Below, piece after piece: positions 1 through 54,981 of a DNA stretch of 64,000 nt (position 1 is its first letter; each line of letters starts with the position of its first letter). The notes below the pieces were generated by a model that was given only the letters and a program-made list of their open reading frames with translations, made no database searches and was not told the DNA's origin. The DNA lies in IMG/VR virus record IMGVR_UViG_3300046507_000773, positions 162,811-226,810 of that record. One strand, 5' to 3'. The position numbers and the translations under genes were made by a program.

Positions 1-1
1 G

Positions 2-574
2 TTCAACGCATGGAACATCCTGACCAACGGCCGCTTCGCCATCAACTGGGAAAAAGCGCAGTACAACGGCCAGATCTGCACCGACGAGAACAACCGCATC
101 CACCTGGGTTACTACCTGGACGCGGAAGGCAACCGTCGCGACCTGCGCGAAATCGACTACCTGGCTGTGCTGAACCGTTTCGGCGGCGGCACCGACCACG
201 ACATCGTCAAGCGCTGGTCCGACTCGTTCATCGACGGTACCGATCCGCTGCTGAAGCGTCTGGAAAACCGCAAGAAGATCATCGACATGATGACGCAGAA
301 CACCGCGGTGTACACGGGCTTCGCTCGTCGCATCTCCTTCGCGCACGTCCTGATGCAAGTCGGCGCCAAGTCGGCCAAGGAAGCCGGCCTGGACTTCCGT
401 ACCATCTCGAGCCACGCTCAGCTGAAGACCAACGAACGCGCCTCCGGCAACTTCGACAACCTGATGATGTCGGGCAGCCAGAGCTCGGGCCTGTTCGGCC
501 GCACCTCGTTCGGTCAAGCGTCGAACAACTTCGGCTCGAACCGTTCGTTCGGCTTCTCGCGCAGCAGCTTCTAA
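2..574 (+). CDS. chmA: Chimallin / phage nuclear shell protein (PhuN, phiKZ gp54-like), 3' part only
   Basis: Frame 2 is open from the window start (FNAWNILTNGRF...NRIHLGYYLDAEGNRRDLREIDYLAVLNRF..., ends GFSRSSF). The RIHLGYY/RDxRxIDYLAxLN motif is recalled from chimallins. Strong high-expression codon bias; lies directly upstream of the nvRNAP beta'-N gene, as in phiKZ. Confidence 0.88.
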   Translation, partial: FNAWNILTNGRFAINWEKAQYNGQICTDENNRIHLGYYLDAEGNRRDLREIDYLAVLNRFGGGTDHDIVKRWSDSFIDGTDPLLKRLENRKKIIDMMTQNTAVYTGFARRISFAHVLMQVGAKSAKEAGLDFRTISSHAQLKTNERASGNFDNLMMSGSQSSGLFGRTSFGQASNNFGSNRSFGFSRSSF

Positions 575-5925: not shown

Positions 5926-6693
5926 ATGAGTGACAACAATAACGGTGGTGGCAACGGTTTCGGCGCTCCGCCGCGCGTCAAGAACGCATTCGACATCACC
6001 AAGCTGAAGCTTACCGCCAAGGGTGCCGATGGCCAGAGCAAAGCCACGATCCAGCTGACCCTGCACCAGAACATGCCGCGCTTCGTCGTCTGGACCGGCA
6101 ACGCCGCCGAACGCGAAGACCGCAACAAAGGCTACGGCAAGATCATCGCCGCTCTGGACCCGGTCGTCCTCGCCGGTTTCTGGGGCATCCTGGACGAAGT
6201 GATCGACCATCAAGGCAAGACCAAGATGGCTGTGCAGAACAAGGGCCACAAGTTCTTCGGCGGCCAGCGCTCCGAGCGTCCGGAAGTGCTGAACACCCTG
6301 ATCGTCGGCAAAGACGAAGACGGCGTCATCTGGATGATGGTTTCCGAAAAGGGCCGCGACCAGATCCGCTTCGAGTTCCGCTTCCCGGAATACCACGTCA
6401 TGATGAATGGCGACGGCACCCCGGTCGACAGCGCAACCGAATGCCGCATGGTGGCCAAGGGCTACCGTGAACTCATGAGCCGCCTGATGGTGACCATGAT
6501 GGCCGACAACTACGTCGAACCGCCTCCGTTCGAGAAGAAGGGTGGCGGCGGTGGCAACCGTGGTAACTGGAACGGTGGCAACCGCGGCGGCAATGGCGGT
6601 AACGGTGGTGGCAACCGCGGCAACTACGGCGGCGGTAACGGCGGTGGCAATTCCGGCGGTGGCGGTGGCATGGACGACGACATCCCGTTCTAA
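5926..6693 (+). CDS. chmC: ChmC/Imp6-like nucleic-acid-binding nucleus protein (phiKZ gp67-like) with Gly/Asn/Arg tail ending DDDIPF
   Basis: Position immediately before the gp68-like gene; folded core flanked by G/N-rich disordered tails; strong codon bias; SD GAGGA. Confidence 0.72.
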   Translation: MSDNNNGGGNGFGAPPRVKNAFDITKLKLTAKGADGQSKATIQLTLHQNMPRFVVWTGNAAEREDRNKGYGKIIAALDPVVLAGFWGILDEVIDHQGKTKMAVQNKGHKFFGGQRSERPEVLNTLIVGKDEDGVIWMMVSEKGRDQIRFEFRFPEYHVMMNGDGTPVDSATECRMVAKGYRELMSRLMVTMMADNYVEPPPFEKKGGGGGNRGNWNGGNRGGNGGNGGGNRGNYGGGNGGGNSGGGGGMDDDIPF

Positions 6694-6803: not shown

Positions 6804-6846
6804 GTATTTGAATTGTAAGCCAGATTCATTTATAAGGAGAAGAAGC

Positions 6847-8388
6847 TTGAAGCTTGCAGAGCCGGATGATCTCCTAAGTGAGAAGTCCACCGTGATCCTG
6901 TCGCACGGTAACGAACAAATCAGCTGGAACATTTCCATGCTGGCTCGCACGCGGAATGAAGAGAACCTCGACCGTTTCAAGGAATTAAACGGATACTGGG
7001 CTCGCCTGCCGGAAAAACGTCAGGACGAGATCTTCAAGGTGTACACCGATATCAAGGACGTACTCCATTCCTCGAGCGATCAAAACGCGGTAGCCTTGCG
7101 ACTGCAGCCGCTAGTTGCAAAGCTGTTTAAGCTTAACCCGATGGACGAGATGGCAACGTATCTCGCCATCTACGAGGATCTCAAGATCCCCTCGAATATC
7201 CACGAACACTACGACAGTAGCGGGGATTCGAGAAATAGCGAACAAGGTACTTACGTTACTAAGCAGTACCGTGACCTTGTTACCATGTCGGTAACGCTGC
7301 GCATCATGGTCCCAGTCTGGGGCGACTACATCGCAATTACTGAGCGTCTCGCGGGGACGACGTTCAAGGAATTCATCGCGATGCAGCTGTTGGCGCATGC
7401 GGCTATCTACAATTCGGACACGATGAACCGGCTGCGCGAATACATCCAAGCGCGTCTGCCACCGGAAACTCCGAAAGAAGTTATCTTCCAGGGCATCAGC
7501 TCGGAAGACTTCCCGGATTGGATTCTGGCCCGAATCCTCACACGTCGTCTGGTTGTTGCCGACTTGCGCGGTAACGACGTGAAGAAGTCCTTGATGCCTT
7601 TCCTGCATAGCTTCATCGAAGGCATGGTGAACCCGAAGCGTAACAACTTCACCAGCATGATCAAGGAAAAGACCTTGGAAGCCGGCGGGTCCACGGAAGA
7701 CAGCAACCTCTCCATCTTGGAGGGTTACCGTCCCCGAGCCGAGCTTACCGCAGGCAACATCGCGCACATGGCAACTTACACCCGCAATGCAGAGCGGATG
7801 GCCAAGCGCATCTGTCCCGATCTTCCCGAGGAATTACTGGCATACAGTCTGCGCTCTTCAAAAGCGCTGTTGACGCAGATGATCATGCCAGTCCAACTCT
7901 CGCTTGCATCGTGGATACTTCGTCCGGTTCTTCCGGTACGCGCCTTGCCGTACTTCCGTAAAGTCGACGTGGTTCGCTGCATCGCTGTAGCTCAAGCGCT
8001 GCTGTGGCACCGTGGGCATTACGAACTGGCAGGTCTGGTGAGTGGTGTCGCCCAGCAAAACCAAGGCGTACATCATCAACGCTCAACAGGCTCTCGTGGT
8101 CGCATCCCGACGGAACTGATCGACGAGATCCACCGGCTTTATCCGTACTCGGAAAAGCCAACAGGCAAAATCCGGGAAGGCCAGGATACCCGTGAACTCA
8201 ACATGGTAGTACAATCAATCAAGGAGATCGACGGCCTCTTTACGAAATTCGAGTGGACTCTCACCCTGCCGCCAGAGTGGGTCGAGAAGCTCACCAAAAA
8301 CAAGAACAACCGCAACTATTCCGTACCCCACGAAATGCGGGTCAGGTTAGCAAGCCTGATCGCTGCAATAGCAAAAAGGAGCTTTTAA
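6847..8388 (+). CDS. Non-virion RNAP fifth (promoter-specificity) subunit, phiKZ gp68-like; TTG start
   Basis: About 510 aa; synteny between ChmC and PicA; AAGGAG 7 nt before in-frame TTG 6847. Confidence 0.75.
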   Translation: MKLAEPDDLLSEKSTVILSHGNEQISWNISMLARTRNEENLDRFKELNGYWARLPEKRQDEIFKVYTDIKDVLHSSSDQNAVALRLQPLVAKLFKLNPMDEMATYLAIYEDLKIPSNIHEHYDSSGDSRNSEQGTYVTKQYRDLVTMSVTLRIMVPVWGDYIAITERLAGTTFKEFIAMQLLAHAAIYNSDTMNRLREYIQARLPPETPKEVIFQGISSEDFPDWILARILTRRLVVADLRGNDVKKSLMPFLHSFIEGMVNPKRNNFTSMIKEKTLEAGGSTEDSNLSILEGYRPRAELTAGNIAHMATYTRNAERMAKRICPDLPEELLAYSLRSSKALLTQMIMPVQLSLASWILRPVLPVRALPYFRKVDVVRCIAVAQALLWHRGHYELAGLVSGVAQQNQGVHHQRSTGSRGRIPTELIDEIHRLYPYSEKPTGKIREGQDTRELNMVVQSIKEIDGLFTKFEWTLTLPPEWVEKLTKNKNNRNYSVPHEMRVRLASLIAAIAKRSF

Positions 8389-9873
8389 ATGTTTCAAGCA
8401 TCGAACATCCGCGTCGCCCGTTTCCTGATTTACGAAACCCTCGGCTACGACAACATGTACCGCCGCGCATACAAGACCACGGCTGATGGCGTTGCCTTCG
8501 ATACCCTGGCTGAGCGCATCTCGGCCCATGACCGTATTACGACCGACACTGTCGTCGGCCTGACCAACGGCTTCCTGGCACCGGACATCAATACCGAATC
8601 GCCCAATCCGATCTTCATCCCGGACGGCTGGGGCGCCAAGCGTTGCCGCTTCTTGCTGGAACTGGAATACGACTTCGGCGGCCTCGGCTCGAAGATCCGT
8701 GAAGCCTTCATGGGCTGGACCGATCACTACGGTTTGTCGCTGCAAAGCCAAGCGATCGACCGCGACATGGTGTTCCACCTGAACTCGGTGTCGCACATGA
8801 AGATCCAGGAAATCCCGACGCTCAACGGCATCGAGAAGCACTACAGCGTCCTGGACACGTCGCACATCCTCGCAGCCCAGCAACATCACGGCCAAAGCGG
8901 CGCCTTCAATAACGAGAAGCTGTTCCGCATGCGTCCGGACGATCTGTTCGCCACGATGCAGCTGTCGCACCTGGACACTGGCGGCACCTACGACGACCGT
9001 ACCCGGATCGGCACTGGCGCCCAAAAGGCATCGCGCTCGTCGAACATCACGACGAACTACATGACGAAGATCCTGGACTCGTACCTGACGGCCGCCCGCA
9101 CCCAGGGTGACCTCGGCCAAGACGCCCCGGACATCCTGGAATCGGCACGCAACCGTTCGTACCAGACCAGCTCGGCTTCGTCCGATCCATTCCTGCGCGA
9201 GATCTCCCGCCTGGAAAACGGTGGCAACTACATCCAGGACCACTTCACGTACGCGACGCTCTTGTCGATCGATCCGAACGCTGACAACATGGCCGAAGTG
9301 CAGGTGCTGCCGACCATGATGCGTGACAGCTGGGCAGGCAACACCTCGGAAGAAACCTGGGGTGGCCGCGACATCTACGCACAGTTCGCCACCATCCTGG
9401 CCCAGTCGGTCCCGTCGATCCTGATGGAAACCGGCCTGCAAGCGGTGAAGTTCCAGTCGACGAATCGCAAGATCGGCATGCAGATCGAAACCACCATCCA
9501 GGGCATCAAGTCCTTCAGCGAAGTGTTCTCCCTGGCGCAACAGGGCAACACTTTCATCGAGCGGGTCAACCGCGAGATCATGCTGGACCTGTCCTTCAAC
9601 GGACAGATGGACTACGGCCTCATCATGGAAATGTCGATCCACGGTGAATGCATCGTCGAGCTTTCGCTGAATGGCGACAACAACCTGCACCGGTTCGTTG
9701 CTCCGCTGTTTGCCGATGCGTTCTTCAGCCCGATCGTCACCAGCGATCAACAGCGCAGCCACATGAACGCGGAACACTTCGGTCAATTGGCCGGACGTCT
9801 CGCAGAAGTCAATCTCCTGGGCAGCGCTACGAGCACCAACATCCAGGTCGGCGCCGGCGGCATGGCGTTCTAA
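8389..9873 (+). CDS. picA: PicA/Imp1 phage-nucleus protein import factor (phiKZ gp69-like)
   Basis: 494 aa, abuts the gp68-like stop codon; conserved-looking motifs YRRAY, IPDGW...RFLL, GWTD, RPDDLF; synteny. Confidence 0.72.
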   Translation: MFQASNIRVARFLIYETLGYDNMYRRAYKTTADGVAFDTLAERISAHDRITTDTVVGLTNGFLAPDINTESPNPIFIPDGWGAKRCRFLLELEYDFGGLGSKIREAFMGWTDHYGLSLQSQAIDRDMVFHLNSVSHMKIQEIPTLNGIEKHYSVLDTSHILAAQQHHGQSGAFNNEKLFRMRPDDLFATMQLSHLDTGGTYDDRTRIGTGAQKASRSSNITTNYMTKILDSYLTAARTQGDLGQDAPDILESARNRSYQTSSASSDPFLREISRLENGGNYIQDHFTYATLLSIDPNADNMAEVQVLPTMMRDSWAGNTSEETWGGRDIYAQFATILAQSVPSILMETGLQAVKFQSTNRKIGMQIETTIQGIKSFSEVFSLAQQGNTFIERVNREIMLDLSFNGQMDYGLIMEMSIHGECIVELSLNGDNNLHRFVAPLFADAFFSPIVTSDQQRSHMNAEHFGQLAGRLAEVNLLGSATSTNIQVGAGGMAF

Positions 9874-9881
9874 ATAACAAA

Positions 9882-9903
9882 GGGGGTAGCCGCAACTACC
9901 CCC
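9882..9903 (+). other. GC-rich intergenic hairpin without U tract (mRNA stability or processing element)
   Basis: GGGGGTAG-CCGCAA-CTACCCCC directly before the SD of the next gene. Confidence 0.45.
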
Positions 9904-9918
9904 AACAAGGAGTAATGC

Positions 9919-11226
9919 ATGAAGTTGCTTGAACTGTACAACACCATAGCCGACACGGCTAACTGGGTGGTGTCTCCGGAAGGATTCATCTCCCAGAAAA
10001 CCATCGGCTCCAATAAGGTCGAACCGCTGCTCGTCAAGAAGCTGCGTCTCGCCATGCCGACCGATGAAATCCTTAAGAGCCGCGAGATGCGCGATGTGAT
10101 GGTCTTCCATCCGCTCAAGGAAGACGTGCTGAAGCCCGAGACCGACGTGTTGGACGCATTGCGTACTTCGCTGAACTCGCGCCTGAACGTTACGACCTGC
10201 TGGGTGGCTCTGTCGCTGCTCATCATCGCAGGTTCTTCGGAAGATCATGCCAAGCTCGATCCGGACCAGAGCGAATTCCTGTCGCATGTGAAAGCTGCGA
10301 ACCAGGATTGCGTGGACGACCTGAAGCGCATCTTCGATTCCATGAAGCTCAACGCCAAGGACAAGACCGCGGTGAAGATCTTCACGAAGAAGGGCGGCAG
10401 CATGGGCGGCCAGAAGTACACCTGCCTCGGTGTGGTCAAGTTCCCGCTGTACCAGGAACTGCTCGATTCCGTCGAGAACACCCCGAAGTCCGGCAAGCCT
10501 GAAGTCTTCGGCATCAAGCTCTCGAGCAAGAAAAGCCGGGATGCCCTGATCGCCCTGTTCCGCTACATCTTCCCGAAGATCGACACGCCGGAAGTGTACC
10601 AGTACGGCAGCAGCAGCCTCGTGGCAGCTTTCCTCGATGCGCTGCTGCAAACCACCGCGAAGATCGCGGCACCGATCAATACCGTGATCGACACCTTCTC
10701 GACGATCTTCACCGATCCCGATGAGATGCGCATTCCGGGCGATTGGCTGCCAGTCTTCATGGACCTGGGCACGATGGTCAACGAGATCCGCATGGTCCCG
10801 CAGCAAACGGCCAATGCCCTCGAAATGCCGGACGACGTGAAAGCCAAGCATGCGGTGGACGGCACCAAAGCAGCACCGGCAACGCAGGCCCCGAGCTCGG
10901 GCGCCTACGTGACGCCAGTGGCTGACACGGGACCGGCCAAGACCGAGCGTGGTCTGGACTTCGCCAAACTCGTCAAGGGTGGCGCACAGCCCCAGAAACC
11001 GGCGTTCGGCTTCGGCCAACCGCAACAACAAAGCCAGTTCGGCGGCAACAACACTCACCCGGCGTTTGCAGCGCTGCGTGGTGGTCAGACGCAGAACGCC
11101 AACAATCCGTTCGCACAGTTCCAAACCGGAAATGCGCAAGCTGGTCGTTCGGGCTTCGGCTTTGGTGGTAGCGGCGGCAACAGTGGCGGCGGCTTCGGCT
11201 TCGGCGGAAGTGGTCGCGGCTTCTAA
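9919..11226 (+). CDS. Conserved nucleus-block protein (gp70-like) with FG-rich disordered C-terminus
   Basis: 435 aa, SD AAGGAG; tail AFGFG...QFGG...GFGFGG...GFGFGG...GF. Confidence 0.7.
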   Translation: MKLLELYNTIADTANWVVSPEGFISQKTIGSNKVEPLLVKKLRLAMPTDEILKSREMRDVMVFHPLKEDVLKPETDVLDALRTSLNSRLNVTTCWVALSLLIIAGSSEDHAKLDPDQSEFLSHVKAANQDCVDDLKRIFDSMKLNAKDKTAVKIFTKKGGSMGGQKYTCLGVVKFPLYQELLDSVENTPKSGKPEVFGIKLSSKKSRDALIALFRYIFPKIDTPEVYQYGSSSLVAAFLDALLQTTAKIAAPINTVIDTFSTIFTDPDEMRIPGDWLPVFMDLGTMVNEIRMVPQQTANALEMPDDVKAKHAVDGTKAAPATQAPSSGAYVTPVADTGPAKTERGLDFAKLVKGGAQPQKPAFGFGQPQQQSQFGGNNTHPAFAALRGGQTQNANNPFAQFQTGNAQAGRSGFGFGGSGGNSGGGFGFGGSGRGF

Positions 11227-11240
11227 GTTGCCGGCATAAG

Positions 11241-11285
11241 CGGCATAAAAGAACCATCCCCGTGTTTGGAGATGGTTCTTTTTTT
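11241..11285. terminator. Bidirectional terminator between convergent genes
   Basis: AAAAGAACCATC...GATGGTTCTTTT flanked by A and T tracts; preceded by CGGCATA. Confidence 0.8.
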
Positions 11286-11303
11286 GTTTGTTTAGAAGTT
11301 GTG

Positions 11304-11639
11304 TTACGCGCGCTTTTTGGTCCGATAAGCCTGAAGGCGTTTGCTCACCACGGTTGCATCTGGCACCAGGATGACCTCCAGATCCTTGAAGGAATCAGTG
11401 GGACTGGTCAATCCCGCCAAGCGCATGGTGATGTAGTGCAGCTCACCGGAGATTTTCATCTTCGTGAGCATTCCGTAGAAATCAAACTCGAAGACTTCCT
11501 TGTCGATGGACTGAACAGCCATCGGTGCAGTCTGCGGGTGATTCCTAAAGTACGTAAGGTGGTCTTCTAATACAGTACGAAACCCTGCATCGTAATAAGA
11601 GAGATCAACCTTACTGATCATCAAATCTTCAATAGCCAT
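11304..11639 (-). CDS. Small conserved protein, possibly LysM/T4 gp53-like baseplate component
   Basis: SD AAGGA; motif HYITMRLAGLTSP...ILVP loosely resembles gp53/LysM. Confidence 0.5.
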   Translation of the reverse strand: MAIEDLMISKVDLSYYDAGFRTVLEDHLTYFRNHPQTAPMAVQSIDKEVFEFDFYGMLTKMKISGELHYITMRLAGLTSPTDSFKDLEVILVPDATVVSKRLQAYRTKKRA

Positions 11640-51771: not shown

Positions 51772-52521
51772 ATGAGCTCTAACAGCATTCTCCTGGCCCA
51801 ACGGCCAAGCATTTTCGTGCCAGGTAAATCGGTACTGTTCGATGGTGCCGATCACATCCGTCTTGCTTACGATAGTCGCATTGGTGACTTCGGTAATGGC
51901 GAATGGACGATGGAAGGTTTCATCAAGTTCCTCGCAGCTCCAACTGACGATGAAGCGATTATGGCCTTCGGTAACGGTGGCGGTTCCCAGTCGCCCTACC
52001 TTCGACTCTGCTACAGTCCGAGTGGTAATTGCTTCTATGCTGATGAAGCCAATAGCGTTGTCGGTTTGTGGTCGGCAGTCGGTAACACCATCGGCCCGAT
52101 CGACTACAATCACTTCTACCACGTCGTCGCAGAGCGCTACAACGGGCAGATCACACTTTATGTGGACGGCAACTTCGATACGACCAAAGGCGCTTACCGT
52201 AATAGCTACGGTGGCTGGAACAGTGCCAGCTCCGTTCACCAGAGCGGCATGCAGTTGGTTGCAGGTTCACTCGTCTACGGTTCGCGTGGTTTCATTGAAA
52301 CTGCCAACGCTCTGCTCTCGAACCTGCGCGTCACCAAAGGCCGGGCAGTCTACAAAGGTAACTTCACGCCCCCGACTTCGAAACTCGAAGCTGGTGAGGG
52401 CACGACCGTACTGCTGTGCAATTCCGACACCCTCGTTGATGCAAGTCCTTACAACTGGCCGCTGATTCTGGACAACTCGACGCCAACCATCAGCGACGTG
52501 TCACCTTTTGTTTCTAACTGA
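51772..52521 (+). CDS. LamG-like protein, tip module 3
   Basis: MSSNSI; WTMEGF, HVVAER, SNLRVTKGRAVY...FTPP. Confidence 0.78.
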   Translation: MSSNSILLAQRPSIFVPGKSVLFDGADHIRLAYDSRIGDFGNGEWTMEGFIKFLAAPTDDEAIMAFGNGGGSQSPYLRLCYSPSGNCFYADEANSVVGLWSAVGNTIGPIDYNHFYHVVAERYNGQITLYVDGNFDTTKGAYRNSYGGWNSASSVHQSGMQLVAGSLVYGSRGFIETANALLSNLRVTKGRAVYKGNFTPPTSKLEAGEGTTVLLCNSDTLVDASPYNWPLILDNSTPTISDVSPFVSN

Positions 52522-52548
52522 AGCTTATCCTGAACAGTAACAAAGATA

Positions 52549-52578
52549 GGGGTTTGCTCATAAGGCGAACCTCTTTTT
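52549..52578 (+). terminator. Terminator inside the lectin array
   Basis: GGTTTGC-TCATAAG-GCGAACC plus TCTTTTT. Confidence 0.7.
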
Positions 52579-52636
52579 CCAAACCAATAAGAAGAAGACT
52601 ACGCTAGTAGTCCAACTCAGACCCTAGGAAGATAGC

Positions 52637-52729
52637 ATGTCTAACAATTTTATTCAAGTACTGGGTACCCAGTCAGACCCCTTCTGGAACTTCGTCAACG
52701 TGCTGTTGGATTTTGATGGAGTGAAATAG
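52637..52729 (+). pseudogene. 30-aa truncated tip module (MSNNFIQVLGTQSDPFWNFVNVLLDFDGVK)
   Basis: Translated by hand; AGGA SD; keeps the family N-terminal motif and DPFW...FDG, then stops 2 nt before the next paralog. Confidence 0.75.
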
Positions 52730-52731
52730 TC

Positions 52732-53535
52732 ATGAGTTCCAATAGCATCATTCTCGCAGCCATTATCGCTGCTTACCCAGGTTCCAATGAAACGAGCATT
52801 TCCGATCCTTATTGGCAAAATGTTGCTCTCCTGATGCATGCGGACGGAACAGACGCAGCAAATTTCTTTACCGATGCCACAGGTAAGTCGACTCTGACGA
52901 CAGTTGCAGTAGGGTCTTCCAAACCCTATACGAGTACACGAAAGAGTTTTGCTGGTCCCACCAGCGCTTATTTCGATGGCATGGGTGGTCACATCAACTC
53001 GAGTCTGAATCCTGACTTCAGCTTCCCGGCTGGAACAGACTTCACCATTGAGGCATGGGTCAACATGACCAGTCTTGTCGGTTCAGGTCAAGTTCCTCGC
53101 TCCTGTATCATTTTCGGTTTCGATGCCACAAGTGGCGATGGCAGCGGTCCCAGGACTTGGTCGATTTTTGTCAGTAACAATGGTGCTCTAATTTTCGAAA
53201 ATGCTGCTTCTGACGGATCGCGCAATTTTGCTATGTCCTCGGCGGCTGCGGCCATTAGGGTTAATAGCTGGCAACATGTTGCGATCGTTCGCAAGGGTAC
53301 TACGATGTACATGTTCATTGATGGCAGGTCCATTGCGTTCACGAAGAGCGGACCTGCCAGTGTGAATGTGGATGTATTAAGCTCTGGCTATATCCGCTTG
53401 GGACGCCTGTACACCTCTAGCGATTGGGATTATCGCCTCAACGGCTACATTGACGAGGTGCGCATTACTAAAGGCGTGGCTCGTTATAGTGCCGATTTCA
53501 CTCCTCCACCAGGGGCATTTGCCAACAACGCTTAA
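52732..53535 (+). CDS. LamG-like protein, tip module 4
   Basis: MSSNSI; DPYW, DFTIEAWV, WQHVAIVR, IDEVRITKGVARY. Confidence 0.8.
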   Translation: MSSNSIILAAIIAAYPGSNETSISDPYWQNVALLMHADGTDAANFFTDATGKSTLTTVAVGSSKPYTSTRKSFAGPTSAYFDGMGGHINSSLNPDFSFPAGTDFTIEAWVNMTSLVGSGQVPRSCIIFGFDATSGDGSGPRTWSIFVSNNGALIFENAASDGSRNFAMSSAAAAIRVNSWQHVAIVRKGTTMYMFIDGRSIAFTKSGPASVNVDVLSSGYIRLGRLYTSSDWDYRLNGYIDEVRITKGVARYSADFTPPPGAFANNA

Positions 53536-53560
53536 GTACTGTTTATTCTAGGAAGATATC

Positions 53561-54268
53561 ATGTCTAACAATAGCATCATCACCCCAGGCCTCTTTGCCA
53601 CGGCGTATGGTCCGAACCTGTTTGATCCCGACCATGACCCGTATTGGAATAAGGTTGCGACCCTTATGCATTTCGACGGAGCCCAAGGTAACTCCTCCTT
53701 CGTCGATGTGAAAGGTCGCCCCATCACCAACTACGGCGTAATTACCGATTTGGGAAATCCAGCAATTGCTCCATCAACAGCCTACTTCGGTGGTGCCGCC
53801 CAGGCTATGATCATTAGTCAGGTGGATGACAACCAGACCGGTGACTTCACGATTGAATGGTTCGGTAAGTGGGAGACCATCGGCAACTGTACCCTGTTCG
53901 ATACTCGCCCGCAGTCCACCAATGGTCCATACATGGACTTTTTCTACTCCAGTGGTGGTGTCGGTATCTGGTTTAACAATGCAACTGCAGTGTATGCTGC
54001 TTTTGTACCTGCGCAGAATAGGACCTATCACCTTGCATTGTCTCGTAAAGGTGGAATTATTCGCTTCTTCATCGACGGCGCGATCTACTTCACCTGGAAC
54101 TATGCTGGTGTCGTGGCCATCCCTCGTTTCTTCTTGGGTGGCAACGGATACAACCAGGCACAGGACTGGTACAAAGGCCGCATGAGTGAATTCCGTTATA
54201 CCAAAGGTGTCGGTCGTTATGAGAATTCGTTCATTCCAGTCTACGCACGCTTCCCAGCTTCACTGTAA
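53561..54268 (+). CDS. LamG-like protein, tip module 5
   Basis: MSNNSI; DPYW, HFDG, DFTIE, EFRYTKGVGRY. Confidence 0.8.
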   Translation: MSNNSIITPGLFATAYGPNLFDPDHDPYWNKVATLMHFDGAQGNSSFVDVKGRPITNYGVITDLGNPAIAPSTAYFGGAAQAMIISQVDDNQTGDFTIEWFGKWETIGNCTLFDTRPQSTNGPYMDFFYSSGGVGIWFNNATAVYAAFVPAQNRTYHLALSRKGGIIRFFIDGAIYFTWNYAGVVAIPRFFLGGNGYNQAQDWYKGRMSEFRYTKGVGRYENSFIPVYARFPASL

Positions 54269-54276
54269 GGATTTGT

Positions 54277-54981
54277 ATGTCTAACAATACCATCATTACT
54301 CCAGGCCTGTTTGCGCTGGGAGCTGCGAACAATCTTTTCGACCCCAACCACGATCCCTACTGGAATAAGGTAGCAACCCTGATGCACTTTGACGGCGCGC
54401 AGGGTAACAGCGTCTTCACGGATGTGAAAGGGCGTGGCGTTACCAACTCTGGCGTCATCACTGATCTGGGTAGCCCGGCAATTGCTCCTGCATCGGCGTA
54501 CTTCAACGGCAGTTCGGGCATGTCGATTGCCCAGGCAGATGACAACCAGACGGGTGATTTTACGGTCGAATTCTTCGCAAAATGGGAAACGATCACAAAT
54601 TGCTCGCTGGTCGATAGTCGACCCCTGAGCAACAATGGCGCGTTTTTGGACTTCTTCTACTATTCAGGGTCATTTGGTATTTACATGAATAGCACCACCC
54701 AAGCTGCGGCAGCATACGCAGTTACGCTCAATAAAACTTACCACGTTGCAGTGTCGCGTAAGAGTGGTGTCGTTCGCATGTTCCTGGATGGCGTGTTGCT
54801 CTTTACCTGGAACTATGCTGGTGTACTGTCGATGCCTCGCTTCTTCCTGGGCGGTAACGGTTATAATCAGTCCATCGAATTCTTCAAAGGGCGCATGAGT
54901 GAATTCCGCTACACCAAAGGCGTGGGTCGTTACGAAAATCCGTTCGTGCCGGTGTACGCACGCTTCCCAGCATCCCTCTAA
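54277..54981 (+). CDS. LamG-like protein, tip module 6 (recent duplicate of module 5)
   Basis: Near-identical ends to 53561 (ends VYARFPASL). Confidence 0.8.
   Translation: MSNNTIITPGLFALGAANNLFDPNHDPYWNKVATLMHFDGAQGNSVFTDVKGRGVTNSGVITDLGSPAIAPASAYFNGSSGMSIAQADDNQTGDFTVEFFAKWETITNCSLVDSRPLSNNGAFLDFFYYSGSFGIYMNSTTQAAAAYAVTLNKTYHVAVSRKSGVVRMFLDGVLLFTWNYAGVLSMPRFFLGGNGYNQSIEFFKGRMSEFRYTKGVGRYENPFVPVYARFPASL

Follow-up and report, generated by a model that had tools for sequence, protein, structure and literature searches.

The protein encoded next to the phage-nucleus import factor PicA ends in a tail that is predicted to be disordered and is rich in phenylalanine-glycine (FG) pairs. This tail is the local variant of an extension found across its whole family: its composition is matched to that of the tail of the shell protein ChmA, and its last four residues are matched to those of PicA, so that it reads better as a putative shell-docking tether than as a proven nuclear-pore-like gate. 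We analyzed a 64,000-nucleotide stretch (the window) of a 226.8-kb genome, for which a nucleotide search of the phage collection returned no match, indicating a new lineage. The 435-aa protein is the homolog of the chimallivirus proteins phiKZ gp70, PhiPA3 gp64, 201phi2-1 gp126, and Goslar gp173 ('Taileboi'), to which its N-terminal domain is 28-33% identical. It matches phrog_3520 (E=4.6e-60 over residues 1-424), a tblastn search found PhiPA3 gp064 and 161 other jumbo-phage records, and 1476 representatives were collected at E<=1e-3. The gene starts 46 nt after the stop codon of the picA homolog, and the same gene order within the conserved chmA-nvRNAP block was observed in the window, in PhiPA3, in three metagenomic relatives, and in PA7, Goslar, SPN3US, and PCH45, the gene being placed after picA and before a small convergent gene and the nvRNAP beta gene. 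The features are listed in the table below.

Features of the locus (window coordinates unless stated otherwise) and the observations that support them
Position	Strand	Feature	Supporting observation
9919..11226	+	Gene for the gp70/gp64/gp173-family protein, last gene of the co-directional picA block	phrog_3520, tblastn, and synteny
9919..10806	+	Folded N-terminal domain, aa 1-296, no recognisable fold relative	AF2 pLDDT above 90 over 1-296
10807..10941	+	P/A/T-rich linker, aa 297-341	pLDDT falls to 50-69
10942..10977	+	Conserved short motif T-E-R-G-L-D-F-A-K-L-V-K, aa 342-353; family consensus TxxGxDFxS....NP	T342, G345, and F348 at least 90% conserved in alignment A1; family consensus in alignment A2; short helix at 348-353 in the model
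10981..11223	+	FG-rich tail predicted disordered, aa 355-435	pLDDT below 50; F columns compared in 7 relatives
11212..11223	+	C-terminal tip G-R-G-F, matched to the PicA tip	Tip covariation with PicA across phages
8389..9873	+	PicA/Imp1 homolog, 494 aa; last 16 aa predicted flexible; tip G-M-A-F at nt 9859-9870	phrog_3141; BLAST, 24% identical to PhiPA3 gp63 over about 450 aa; AF2 mean pLDDT 84, residues 479-494 below 50
1..574	+	3' part of chmA (gene starts upstream of the window); FG-rich C-terminal tail at nt 485-571 (SGLFGRTSFGQASNNFGSNRSFGFSRSSF)	PF25677 and phrog_4795 on the full ORF
5926..6693	+	ChmC/Imp6 homolog with an N/G-rich tail and the acidic tip D-D-D-I-P-F at nt 6673-6690; context gene and negative control for tail matching	phrog_3284
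11237..11294	+	Terminator-like hairpin followed by a T-run, closing the block	Fold energy -24.3 kcal/mol, z = -6.5 against shuffles
52466-54511 (own genome)		Third protein, with an FG segment of roughly 120 aa	FG density among the ORFs of the genome

A sequence-only reading had reported a nucleoporin-like FG-repeat tail at 10990-11226 and had inferred from it a convergent FG-based gate or condensate at the phage nuclear shell. The observation is confirmed. The 81-residue tail contains AFGFG, QFGG, SGFGFGG, and GGFGFGG, giving 7 FG dipeptides, and is composed of 11 F, 23 G, 12 Q, 9 A, and 7 N with no D/E and 4 K/R. To determine whether the FG pattern exceeds what composition alone would give, we shuffled the 81 residues. 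Shuffled tails contain 3.1 FG on average (P(>=7) about 0.01), and F-G adjacency in either order is 13 in the actual tail (P about 0.0015), indicating that the pattern is more than composition alone, though only moderately so. Among the 1029 ORFs of at least 60 aa in the genome, only three real proteins reach this FG density: the gp70-like protein, ChmA, and a third protein. Across eight relatives (49-87% identical), the F positions are 86% conserved and the other tail positions 45%, and only F, with no Y or W, is used in all eight tails.

We next looked for known relatives of each part of the protein. For the N-terminal domain, Foldseek searches against PDB and AFDB clusters found only uncharacterised members of its own family, and a VIA-align wide search of PDB gave a best Z of 6.1, which is at noise level. 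Pfam searches returned nothing relevant, neither with the full protein (no Nucleoporin_FG, PF13634, at E<=0.1) nor with the tail alone (E<=10). Language-model features place the tail nearest to 'Nucleoporin FG repeat region' clusters, but the score of 0.75 is below the trust level of the tool, so that this is a lead only.

In order to test whether FG is conserved among gp70 homologs, a condition on which the sequence-only reading had staked its interpretation, we examined 150 family representatives. All 150 carry a tail, with a median length of 150 aa. Charged residues account for 7% of the tails against 25% of the folded part, while Q/N account for 20%, P for 14%, and G for 10.5%, and the last residue is hydrophobic in 129 of 150. 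However, 70 of the 150 tails have no FG and only 9 have five or more, the tails without FG being rich in M, W, Y, LG, or R/D instead. The cultured phages lack the FG character: phiKZ-like and PhiPA3 tails are rich in M/Q/P, that of Goslar in W/M/N, that of SPN3US in L/G/S, and that of PCH45 in R/D. FG is thus a feature of the clade and not of the family; the condition set by the sequence-only reading fails family-wide, and the conserved function therefore cannot depend on FG as such.

Since tail composition changes from lineage to lineage, we asked whether it follows that of other proteins of the same phage. Over 21 lineages below 45% identity, the centred composition cosine between the ChmA tail and the gp70-like tail is 0.35 within a phage and 0.00 when permuted (P<5e-5), and F and R content each correlate at rho 0.59. 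The controls are flat, with 0.04 (P=0.26) for the ChmC tail against the gp70 tail and 0.007 (P=0.44) for the gp70 folded part against its own tail. Genome-wide compositional bias as the cause of the matching is therefore rejected, since the ChmC tail, the gp70 folded part, and the ChmA core do not track the tail. Shared 6-mers are also enriched within a phage (P 0.0007-0.005), for example NFGRGG in both proteins of lineage L012, QPQYGG in both proteins of lineage L025, and GRTSFG vs GRSGFG here. Gene conversion between the two tails is rejected, because only 9-11-nt FGF-codon matches are shared. In this clade, both tails are FG-rich.

The last four residues follow PicA rather than ChmA. Their BLOSUM62 score against the PicA tip is 5.17 within a phage and -2.38 when permuted (P<5e-5), and the last residue is identical in 11 of 23 lineages against 3.2 expected. 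Positions -5 to -28 show nothing, and eleven other neighbor pairs show nothing (all P>0.06), so that tip matching as a property of all genes in the block is rejected. Cultured phages agree, with LGLL/LGLL in PhiPA3, QVL/RLL in phiKZ-like phages, GNF/NRF in Goslar, and VNR/GRR in PCH45. Both tips have pLDDT below 50 and are predicted free, and docking of a tip back onto its own protein was not seen. It should be mentioned that the permutation tests do not fully remove relatedness. A phylogenetically independent-pairs test on the last residue goes mostly in the expected direction (for example 2.7 same against 0.3-0.5 opposite) but rests on only 4-5 pairs per trait and is not significant. The gp70-like tip does not resemble that of ChmA (P=0.81 for the last four residues), and the [ST]G[LIVM][FY] motif of ChmA (SGLF), located 25-29 residues from its end, occurs in 0 of 44 gp70-like tails and 10 of 32 ChmA tails. 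Simple mimicry of the ChmA docking segments is therefore not established, although the two extensions resemble each other in composition and short motifs, and ChmA also has a flexible C-terminal extension with an aromatic or hydrophobic end, whose segments (CTS1/CTS2) dock on neighboring protomers (PMC9365700). A complex prediction of ChmA with tail residues 330-435 gave no answer, both chains being poorly folded without alignments, and is evidence neither for nor against binding.

Reports on homologs place the family at the shell or inside the phage nucleus. PhiPA3 gp64 localizes to the shell and co-purifies with ChmB and gp63, that is, PicA (PMC10643120), whereas phiKZ gp70 (bioRxiv 10.1101/2024.03.27.586873) and Goslar gp173 (bioRxiv 10.64898/2026.10.01.755736) are described as nuclear-localized, phiKZ gp70 being described as a nuclear rather than a shell protein. 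In addition, phiKZ gp70 did not co-purify with Imp1/PicA in a binary E. coli pull-down, although tags near the C-termini may have masked a tip. Literature searches for phiKZ gp70 phenotypes (ASO screen, Tn-seq) found nothing specific, and no function is published for any member of the family.

Taken together, our analyses establish the predicted disorder of the tail behind a domain predicted to be well folded, its joint change with the ChmA tail, and the joint change of its tip with that of PicA, while the shell localization comes from the literature on homologs. The rest is inferred from these sequence patterns, without demonstrated physical contact, and we hold it with moderate confidence only. 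In this view, the tail would be a flexible tether keeping the folded domain on the ChmA lattice next to PicA; its low-complexity part would make many weak contacts with ChmA or its tail-binding grooves, here through F-G stickers separated by G/Q/N/S spacers; and its hydrophobic tip would plug into a receptor pocket also used by the PicA tip, for which ChmA is the leading candidate. FG repeats would therefore be the way this clade spells a shell-matching tail and not a family-wide nucleoporin-like device. However, another explanation could be that composition matching reflects a shared selective environment rather than binding.

The interpretation of the sequence-only reading is only partly supported. 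An FG-type selective phase, in which the FG segments of the gp70-like protein, of ChmA, and of the third protein would cohere into a hydrophobic meshwork at the shell through which PicA, alone or with cargo, would partition as transport receptors do in the nuclear pore, is not excluded in this clade but seems unlikely. As in FG nucleoporins such as those of the Nup98/Nup42 type, the tail is a nearly uncharged segment with predicted disorder, with FG motifs every 10-12 residues (about one FG per 12 aa) in G/Q/N/S spacers, F residues conserved while spacers drift, attached to a folded domain, and located, by homology, at the boundary of a DNA compartment next to an import factor. Moreover, three proteins of the genome carry such segments, one of them the shell protein itself. 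On the other hand, it is not homologous to these nucleoporins, as judged by the absence of a profile match, and is about ten times shorter, FG nucleoporins typically containing tens of FG motifs over hundreds of residues. FG is not conserved in orthologs, some of which have highly charged tails, such as that of PCH45, incompatible with a hydrophobic phase as the conserved function. No pore or channel has been seen in the ChmA lattice according to a 2025 review (PMC12908238), and the pull-down cited above gave no Imp1-gp70 binding. A gate or condensate thus remains hypothetical and is not the best-supported reading.

The other readings are more doubtful still. The tail could handle RNA, working with ChmC and the non-virion RNA polymerase and driving co-condensation with mRNA at the shell for export, since the gene lies between nvRNAP subunit genes and two genes downstream of chmC, the glycine-rich tail of shell-associated ChmC drives condensates with RNA in vitro (PMC11077065), and several homologs (among them the sequences P0161, P0027, and P0051) have RGG- or GYG-type tails typical of RNA-binding proteins. 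However, the present tail has one RGG, one GRS, and one GRG with only four basic residues, its composition does not track that of the ChmC tail, which lacks FG and ends in an acidic tip similar to that of bacterial SSB, and no nucleic-acid-binding fold was found in the N-terminal domain. The tip could also be an import or docking signal read by PicA, whose own look-alike tip would occupy the same site when idle, as the IBB domain of importin-alpha does, the low-complexity part being just a spacer. The matching of these two tips only, their predicted freedom, and the nuclear localization of phiKZ gp70 and Goslar gp173 agree with this possibility, but the nvRNAP subunits, which are imported proteins of the same block, do not share the tip, the Imp1-gp70 pull-down was negative, and the matching of the spacer to the ChmA tail is not explained. 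Finally, the extreme variability of tail composition and the low spacer conservation could suggest a neutral, drifting appendage in which the FG pattern has no role of its own. This is the least likely reading, given the presence of a tail in all 150 sampled members, the conservation of F over about 50% divergence, and the covariation with ChmA and PicA, which control segments do not show.

These findings bear on how proteins cross the ChmA lattice and on how PicA/Imp1 is held at the shell. Homologs of this protein were already reported at the shell or in the phage nucleus; the matching of its tail to that of the shell protein and of its last four residues to those of PicA is what we add, and makes it a concrete and cheap experimental handle in PhiPA3, phiKZ, or Goslar. 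In the literature library searched, no paper contains both 'phage nucleus' and 'phenylalanine-glycine'. In the boldest and unlikely case, the three FG-rich segments of this clade of uncultivated chimalliviruses would together form a convergent, nucleoporin-like cohesive layer on the proteinaceous nuclear shell, with PicA as the receptor passing through it, and each lineage would use its own 'sticker dialect' (F, W, Y, M, LG, R/D) for the same shell-surface phase. The FG-rich clade also gives a natural test case for whether a phage nucleus has converged on the physical chemistry of nuclear-pore FG domains.

The ORF next to the picA homolog encodes a 435-aa protein whose last 81 residues read as AFGFG, QFGG, SGFGFGG, GGFGFGG and a final GRGF, that is 7 FG dipeptides and 11 F among 23 G, 12 Q, 9 A and 7 N, with no acidic residue and four basic ones. 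In order to evaluate whether this pattern exceeds what composition alone would give, we shuffled these residues and obtained 3.1 FG on average, with P about 0.01 for seven or more FG, and P about 0.0015 for F-G adjacency in either order. A P/A/T-rich linker precedes the tail. A sequence-only reading of this DNA had described a low-complexity tail with 7 FG dipeptides after a linker, on the gene following picA, and both this description and its coordinates are correct. The protein belongs to phrog_3520 and is homologous over its first ~300 residues to PhiPA3 gp064, annotated as similar to phiKZ gp070 and 201phi2-1 gp126, and to proteins of 162 jumbo-phage records, the closest being Burkholderia phage FLC9 at 33%. 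The upstream ORF is the PicA/Imp1 homolog (phrog_3141), and further upstream lie an nvRNAP subunit homolog and the ChmC/Imp6 homolog, while a small convergent gene and the nvRNAP beta and beta' genes are found downstream. A strong terminator-like hairpin with a T-run (-24.3 kcal/mol, z = -6.5), which a simple terminator scan missed, closes the block between the gp70-like gene and the convergent gene. A 930-aa antisense ORF overlaps picA and the gp70-like gene, but its R/H/V/A-rich translation is typical of a spurious opposite-strand frame, and it was treated as non-coding. The 64 kb examined are the last of a 226.8-kb single-contig phage genome, for which no nucleotide-level relative was found in the phage collection.

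Coordinates of the features described in the text (window positions unless stated; L numbers denote collected loci)
Feature	Position	Strand	Detail
gp70-like gene	9919..11226	+	435 aa
FG-rich tail of the gp70-like protein	10981-11223	+	residues 355-435
PicA/Imp1 homolog	8389..9873		phrog_3141
nvRNAP subunit homolog	6808..8388
ChmC/Imp6 homolog	5926-6693		tip at 6673-6690
ChmA gene	1-574		starts upstream of the window; tail at 485-571
Terminator-like hairpin	11237-11294
Convergent gene	11304-11639		111 aa
Antisense ORF (and similar)	8347-11139	-	930 aa
FG-containing protein outside the window	own genome C1:52466-54511 (L003:4467-6512)		681 aa; phrog_36323/15010
SPN3US locus with PicA and gp70-like tails	L079 779-3859
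PCH45 locus with PicA and gp70-like tails	L080 983-3895
Macro-domain genes (PF01661) of relatives	L016 18852-19319, L017 16437-16901, L018 18378-18827 (minus strand)		about 7-8 kb downstream of the gp70-like gene

To study the organization of the protein, we predicted its structure with AlphaFold2 using 150 homologs as alignment. The model shows a confident N-terminal domain, with pLDDT above 90 for residues 1-296, after which confidence falls through the linker. A short helix is predicted on the conserved GLDF motif (348-353), and from about residue 355 to the end pLDDT is below 50. Fold searches of the N-terminal domain against PDB and AFDB clusters returned no recognizable fold relative.

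We then asked whether the FG tail is shared by the family. An exhaustive profile-free search found 1476 representatives at 50% clustering. In the 150 that we aligned, every protein has a tail after the folded domain, with a median length of 150 aa, in which charged residues are 7% against 25% in the folded part, Q/N are 20%, P 14% and G 10.5%, and the last residue is hydrophobic in 129 of 150. FG is not a family trait, since the median is one FG per tail, 70 of 150 tails have none, and only nine have five or more, eight of those being the query and its relatives at 44-87% identity. Model phages confirm this, as the PhiPA3 and phiKZ-like tails are rich in M/Q/P/G, that of Goslar in W/M/N, that of SPN3US in L/G/S and that of PCH45 in R/D. 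Conservation of FG among gp70 homologs had been set beforehand as a criterion, and by this criterion the FG feature is not conserved. Within the clade, however, the FG pattern is under constraint: across seven relatives whose folded domains are 49-87% identical, the eleven F columns are 86% conserved against 45% for all other tail columns, and all eight tails use only F as aromatic residue, with no Y or W. This is the pattern expected for functional stickers in variable spacers.

A scan of all ORFs of the same genome for FG-rich segments picked out only two other real proteins. One is ChmA itself (PF25677, phrog_4795), whose N-terminus has two FG in a Q/N-rich stretch and whose last 29 residues hold four FG, the ChmA C-terminal tails of relatives being similar. 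Ten of 32 distinct ChmA tails carry the motif [ST]G[LIVM][FY] at a fixed 25-29 residues from the end, against 0.6 expected by chance. The other is a 681-aa protein of unknown function encoded next to a DNA polymerase gene, with an internal segment of about 120 aa containing 8-9 FG. This segment is conserved with 7-10 FG in five relatives and becomes W/G/Q-rich in distant homologs. The protein also carries a ChmA-like SGLF motif, and its language-model neighbors are Nup42- and Nup98-type clusters, although at low score.

To determine whether the tail varies together with other proteins of the block, we collected ChmA, ChmC, PicA and the gp70-like protein from 50-odd loci taken from IMG/VR, Logan, ENA, PhiPA3 and the window's own genome. 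Over 21 lineages below 45% identity, the centered composition of the last 45 residues of ChmA correlates with that of the last 100 residues of the gp70-like protein in the same phage, with a cosine of 0.35 against 0.00 after permutation (P<5e-5). F and R content each correlate at rho 0.59, Q at 0.52 and P at 0.51. The controls are flat, with 0.04 (P=0.26) for the ChmC tail against the gp70-like tail, 0.007 (P=0.44) for the gp70-like folded part against its own tail, and 0.09 (P=0.065) for the ChmA core against the gp70-like tail. Shared hexamers are also enriched within phages, at P 0.0007-0.005, such as NFGRGG in both, QPQYGG in both, SRWAQQ vs SRWSQQ, and GRTSFG vs GRSGFG in the phage studied here. 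At the DNA level the two tails of this genome share only FGF-codon strings, so gene conversion is not the cause. Among the collected loci, we also observed that the ChmC/Imp6 homolog of this phage ends in GGGMDDDIPF, which is almost the C-terminal tip of bacterial SSB (MDFDDDIPF), and that an acidic D-D-[DE]-[ILV]-P-[FWYM] end is present in nearly all 50 ChmC homologs collected. The ChmC paper does not mention SSB, and this tip may recruit host or phage SSB-interacting proteins. Three relatives carry in addition a Macro-domain gene downstream of the gp70-like gene.

The last four residues of PicA and of the gp70-like protein resemble each other within a phage and differ between phages.

C-terminal tips of PicA and of the gp70-like protein by phage or collected locus (L numbers)
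Source	PicA tip	gp70-like tip
this phage	GMAF	GRGF
PhiPA3	LGLL	LGLL
L023	GFGNI	GFGNI
L014	QFGF	NFGF
L010	YGLI	RGLI
L045	RRSY	GRSY
L050	RSSW	RNGW
phiKZ-like PA7	QVL	RLL
Goslar	GNF	NRF

Over 23 lineages, the BLOSUM62 score of the last four residues is 5.17 within a phage against -2.38 permuted (P<5e-5), and the last residue is identical in 11 of 23 against 3.2 expected, while windows starting 5, 8, 15 or 25 residues from the end show nothing. However, these permutations do not remove relatedness, and a tree-based independent-pairs test on the last residue is mostly concordant but has only 4-5 usable pairs per trait and is not significant. Eleven other pairs involving the gp68-like subunit, ChmA, ChmC, both nvRNAP large subunits and two other neighbors show nothing, with all P>0.06. 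The last 16 residues of PicA are predicted flexible. In SPN3US both the PicA tail and the gp70-like tail are built of LG/GL repeats, and in PCH45 the gp70-like tail is an extreme R/D-rich repeat ending in R, as does its PicA.

Published data on homologs bear on the location of this protein. PhiPA3 gp64, which has no known function, localizes to the nuclear shell and was recovered with gp63 (PicA) in ChmB pull-downs (PMC10643120). phiKZ gp70 is listed among nuclear proteins and did not co-purify with Imp1 when co-expressed in E. coli, whereas gp67 (Imp6/ChmC) did (bioRxiv 10.1101/2024.03.27.586873). Goslar gp173, which we show here to be the homolog, is called 'Taileboi', and a deletion variant of it (legend: 'residues 1-30 ... 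with deletion of residues 1-120') was used as a nuclear-targeting handle (bioRxiv 10.64898/2026.10.01.755736). The C-terminal segments CTS1 and CTS2 of ChmA dock on neighboring protomers through flexible linkers (PMC9365700), and the N/G-rich tail of ChmC drives RNA condensates (PMC11077065). In the library searched, no paper contained both 'phage nucleus' and 'phenylalanine-glycine'.

Taken together, the best-supported reading is that the tail is a shell-matched tether ending in a docking tip shared with PicA, FG being the sticker type used by this clade. What the analysis itself shows is the covariation with the ChmA tail and that of the tip with PicA, to which is added the reported shell or nuclear localization of homologs, whereas the steps leading from covariation to physical contact, and hence tethering and docking, are inferred, the single complex prediction having returned no answer. 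The sequence-only reading had proposed a convergent FG-based gate or condensate at the phage nuclear shell, and the data support this interpretation only in part. Such a nucleoporin-like phase remains possible for this clade, since the shell protein itself is FG-rich, a third protein carries a longer FG segment, and language-model features place the tail nearest to FG-nucleoporin clusters, at a score that is only a lead. Nevertheless, it cannot be the conserved mechanism of the family because many tails lack hydrophobic stickers or are highly charged. Other explanations could be an RNA-linked tail, a cargo signal with PicA as pseudo-substrate, or a neutral spacer, each of which fits some observations and fails others.

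Compared with known systems, the protein is a member of the gp70/gp64/gp173 family. It resembles FG nucleoporins in composition, spacing and conservation pattern but fails on valency, profile match and conservation among orthologs. It is not a homolog and is at most a convergent analog. It resembles the ChmA tail in make-up but not in terminal motif. The FG tail differs by its FG composition from the other forms of a tail that is a known but uncharacterized feature of the family, and the more general and more testable findings are that this tail is matched to that of ChmA and its tip to that of PicA.
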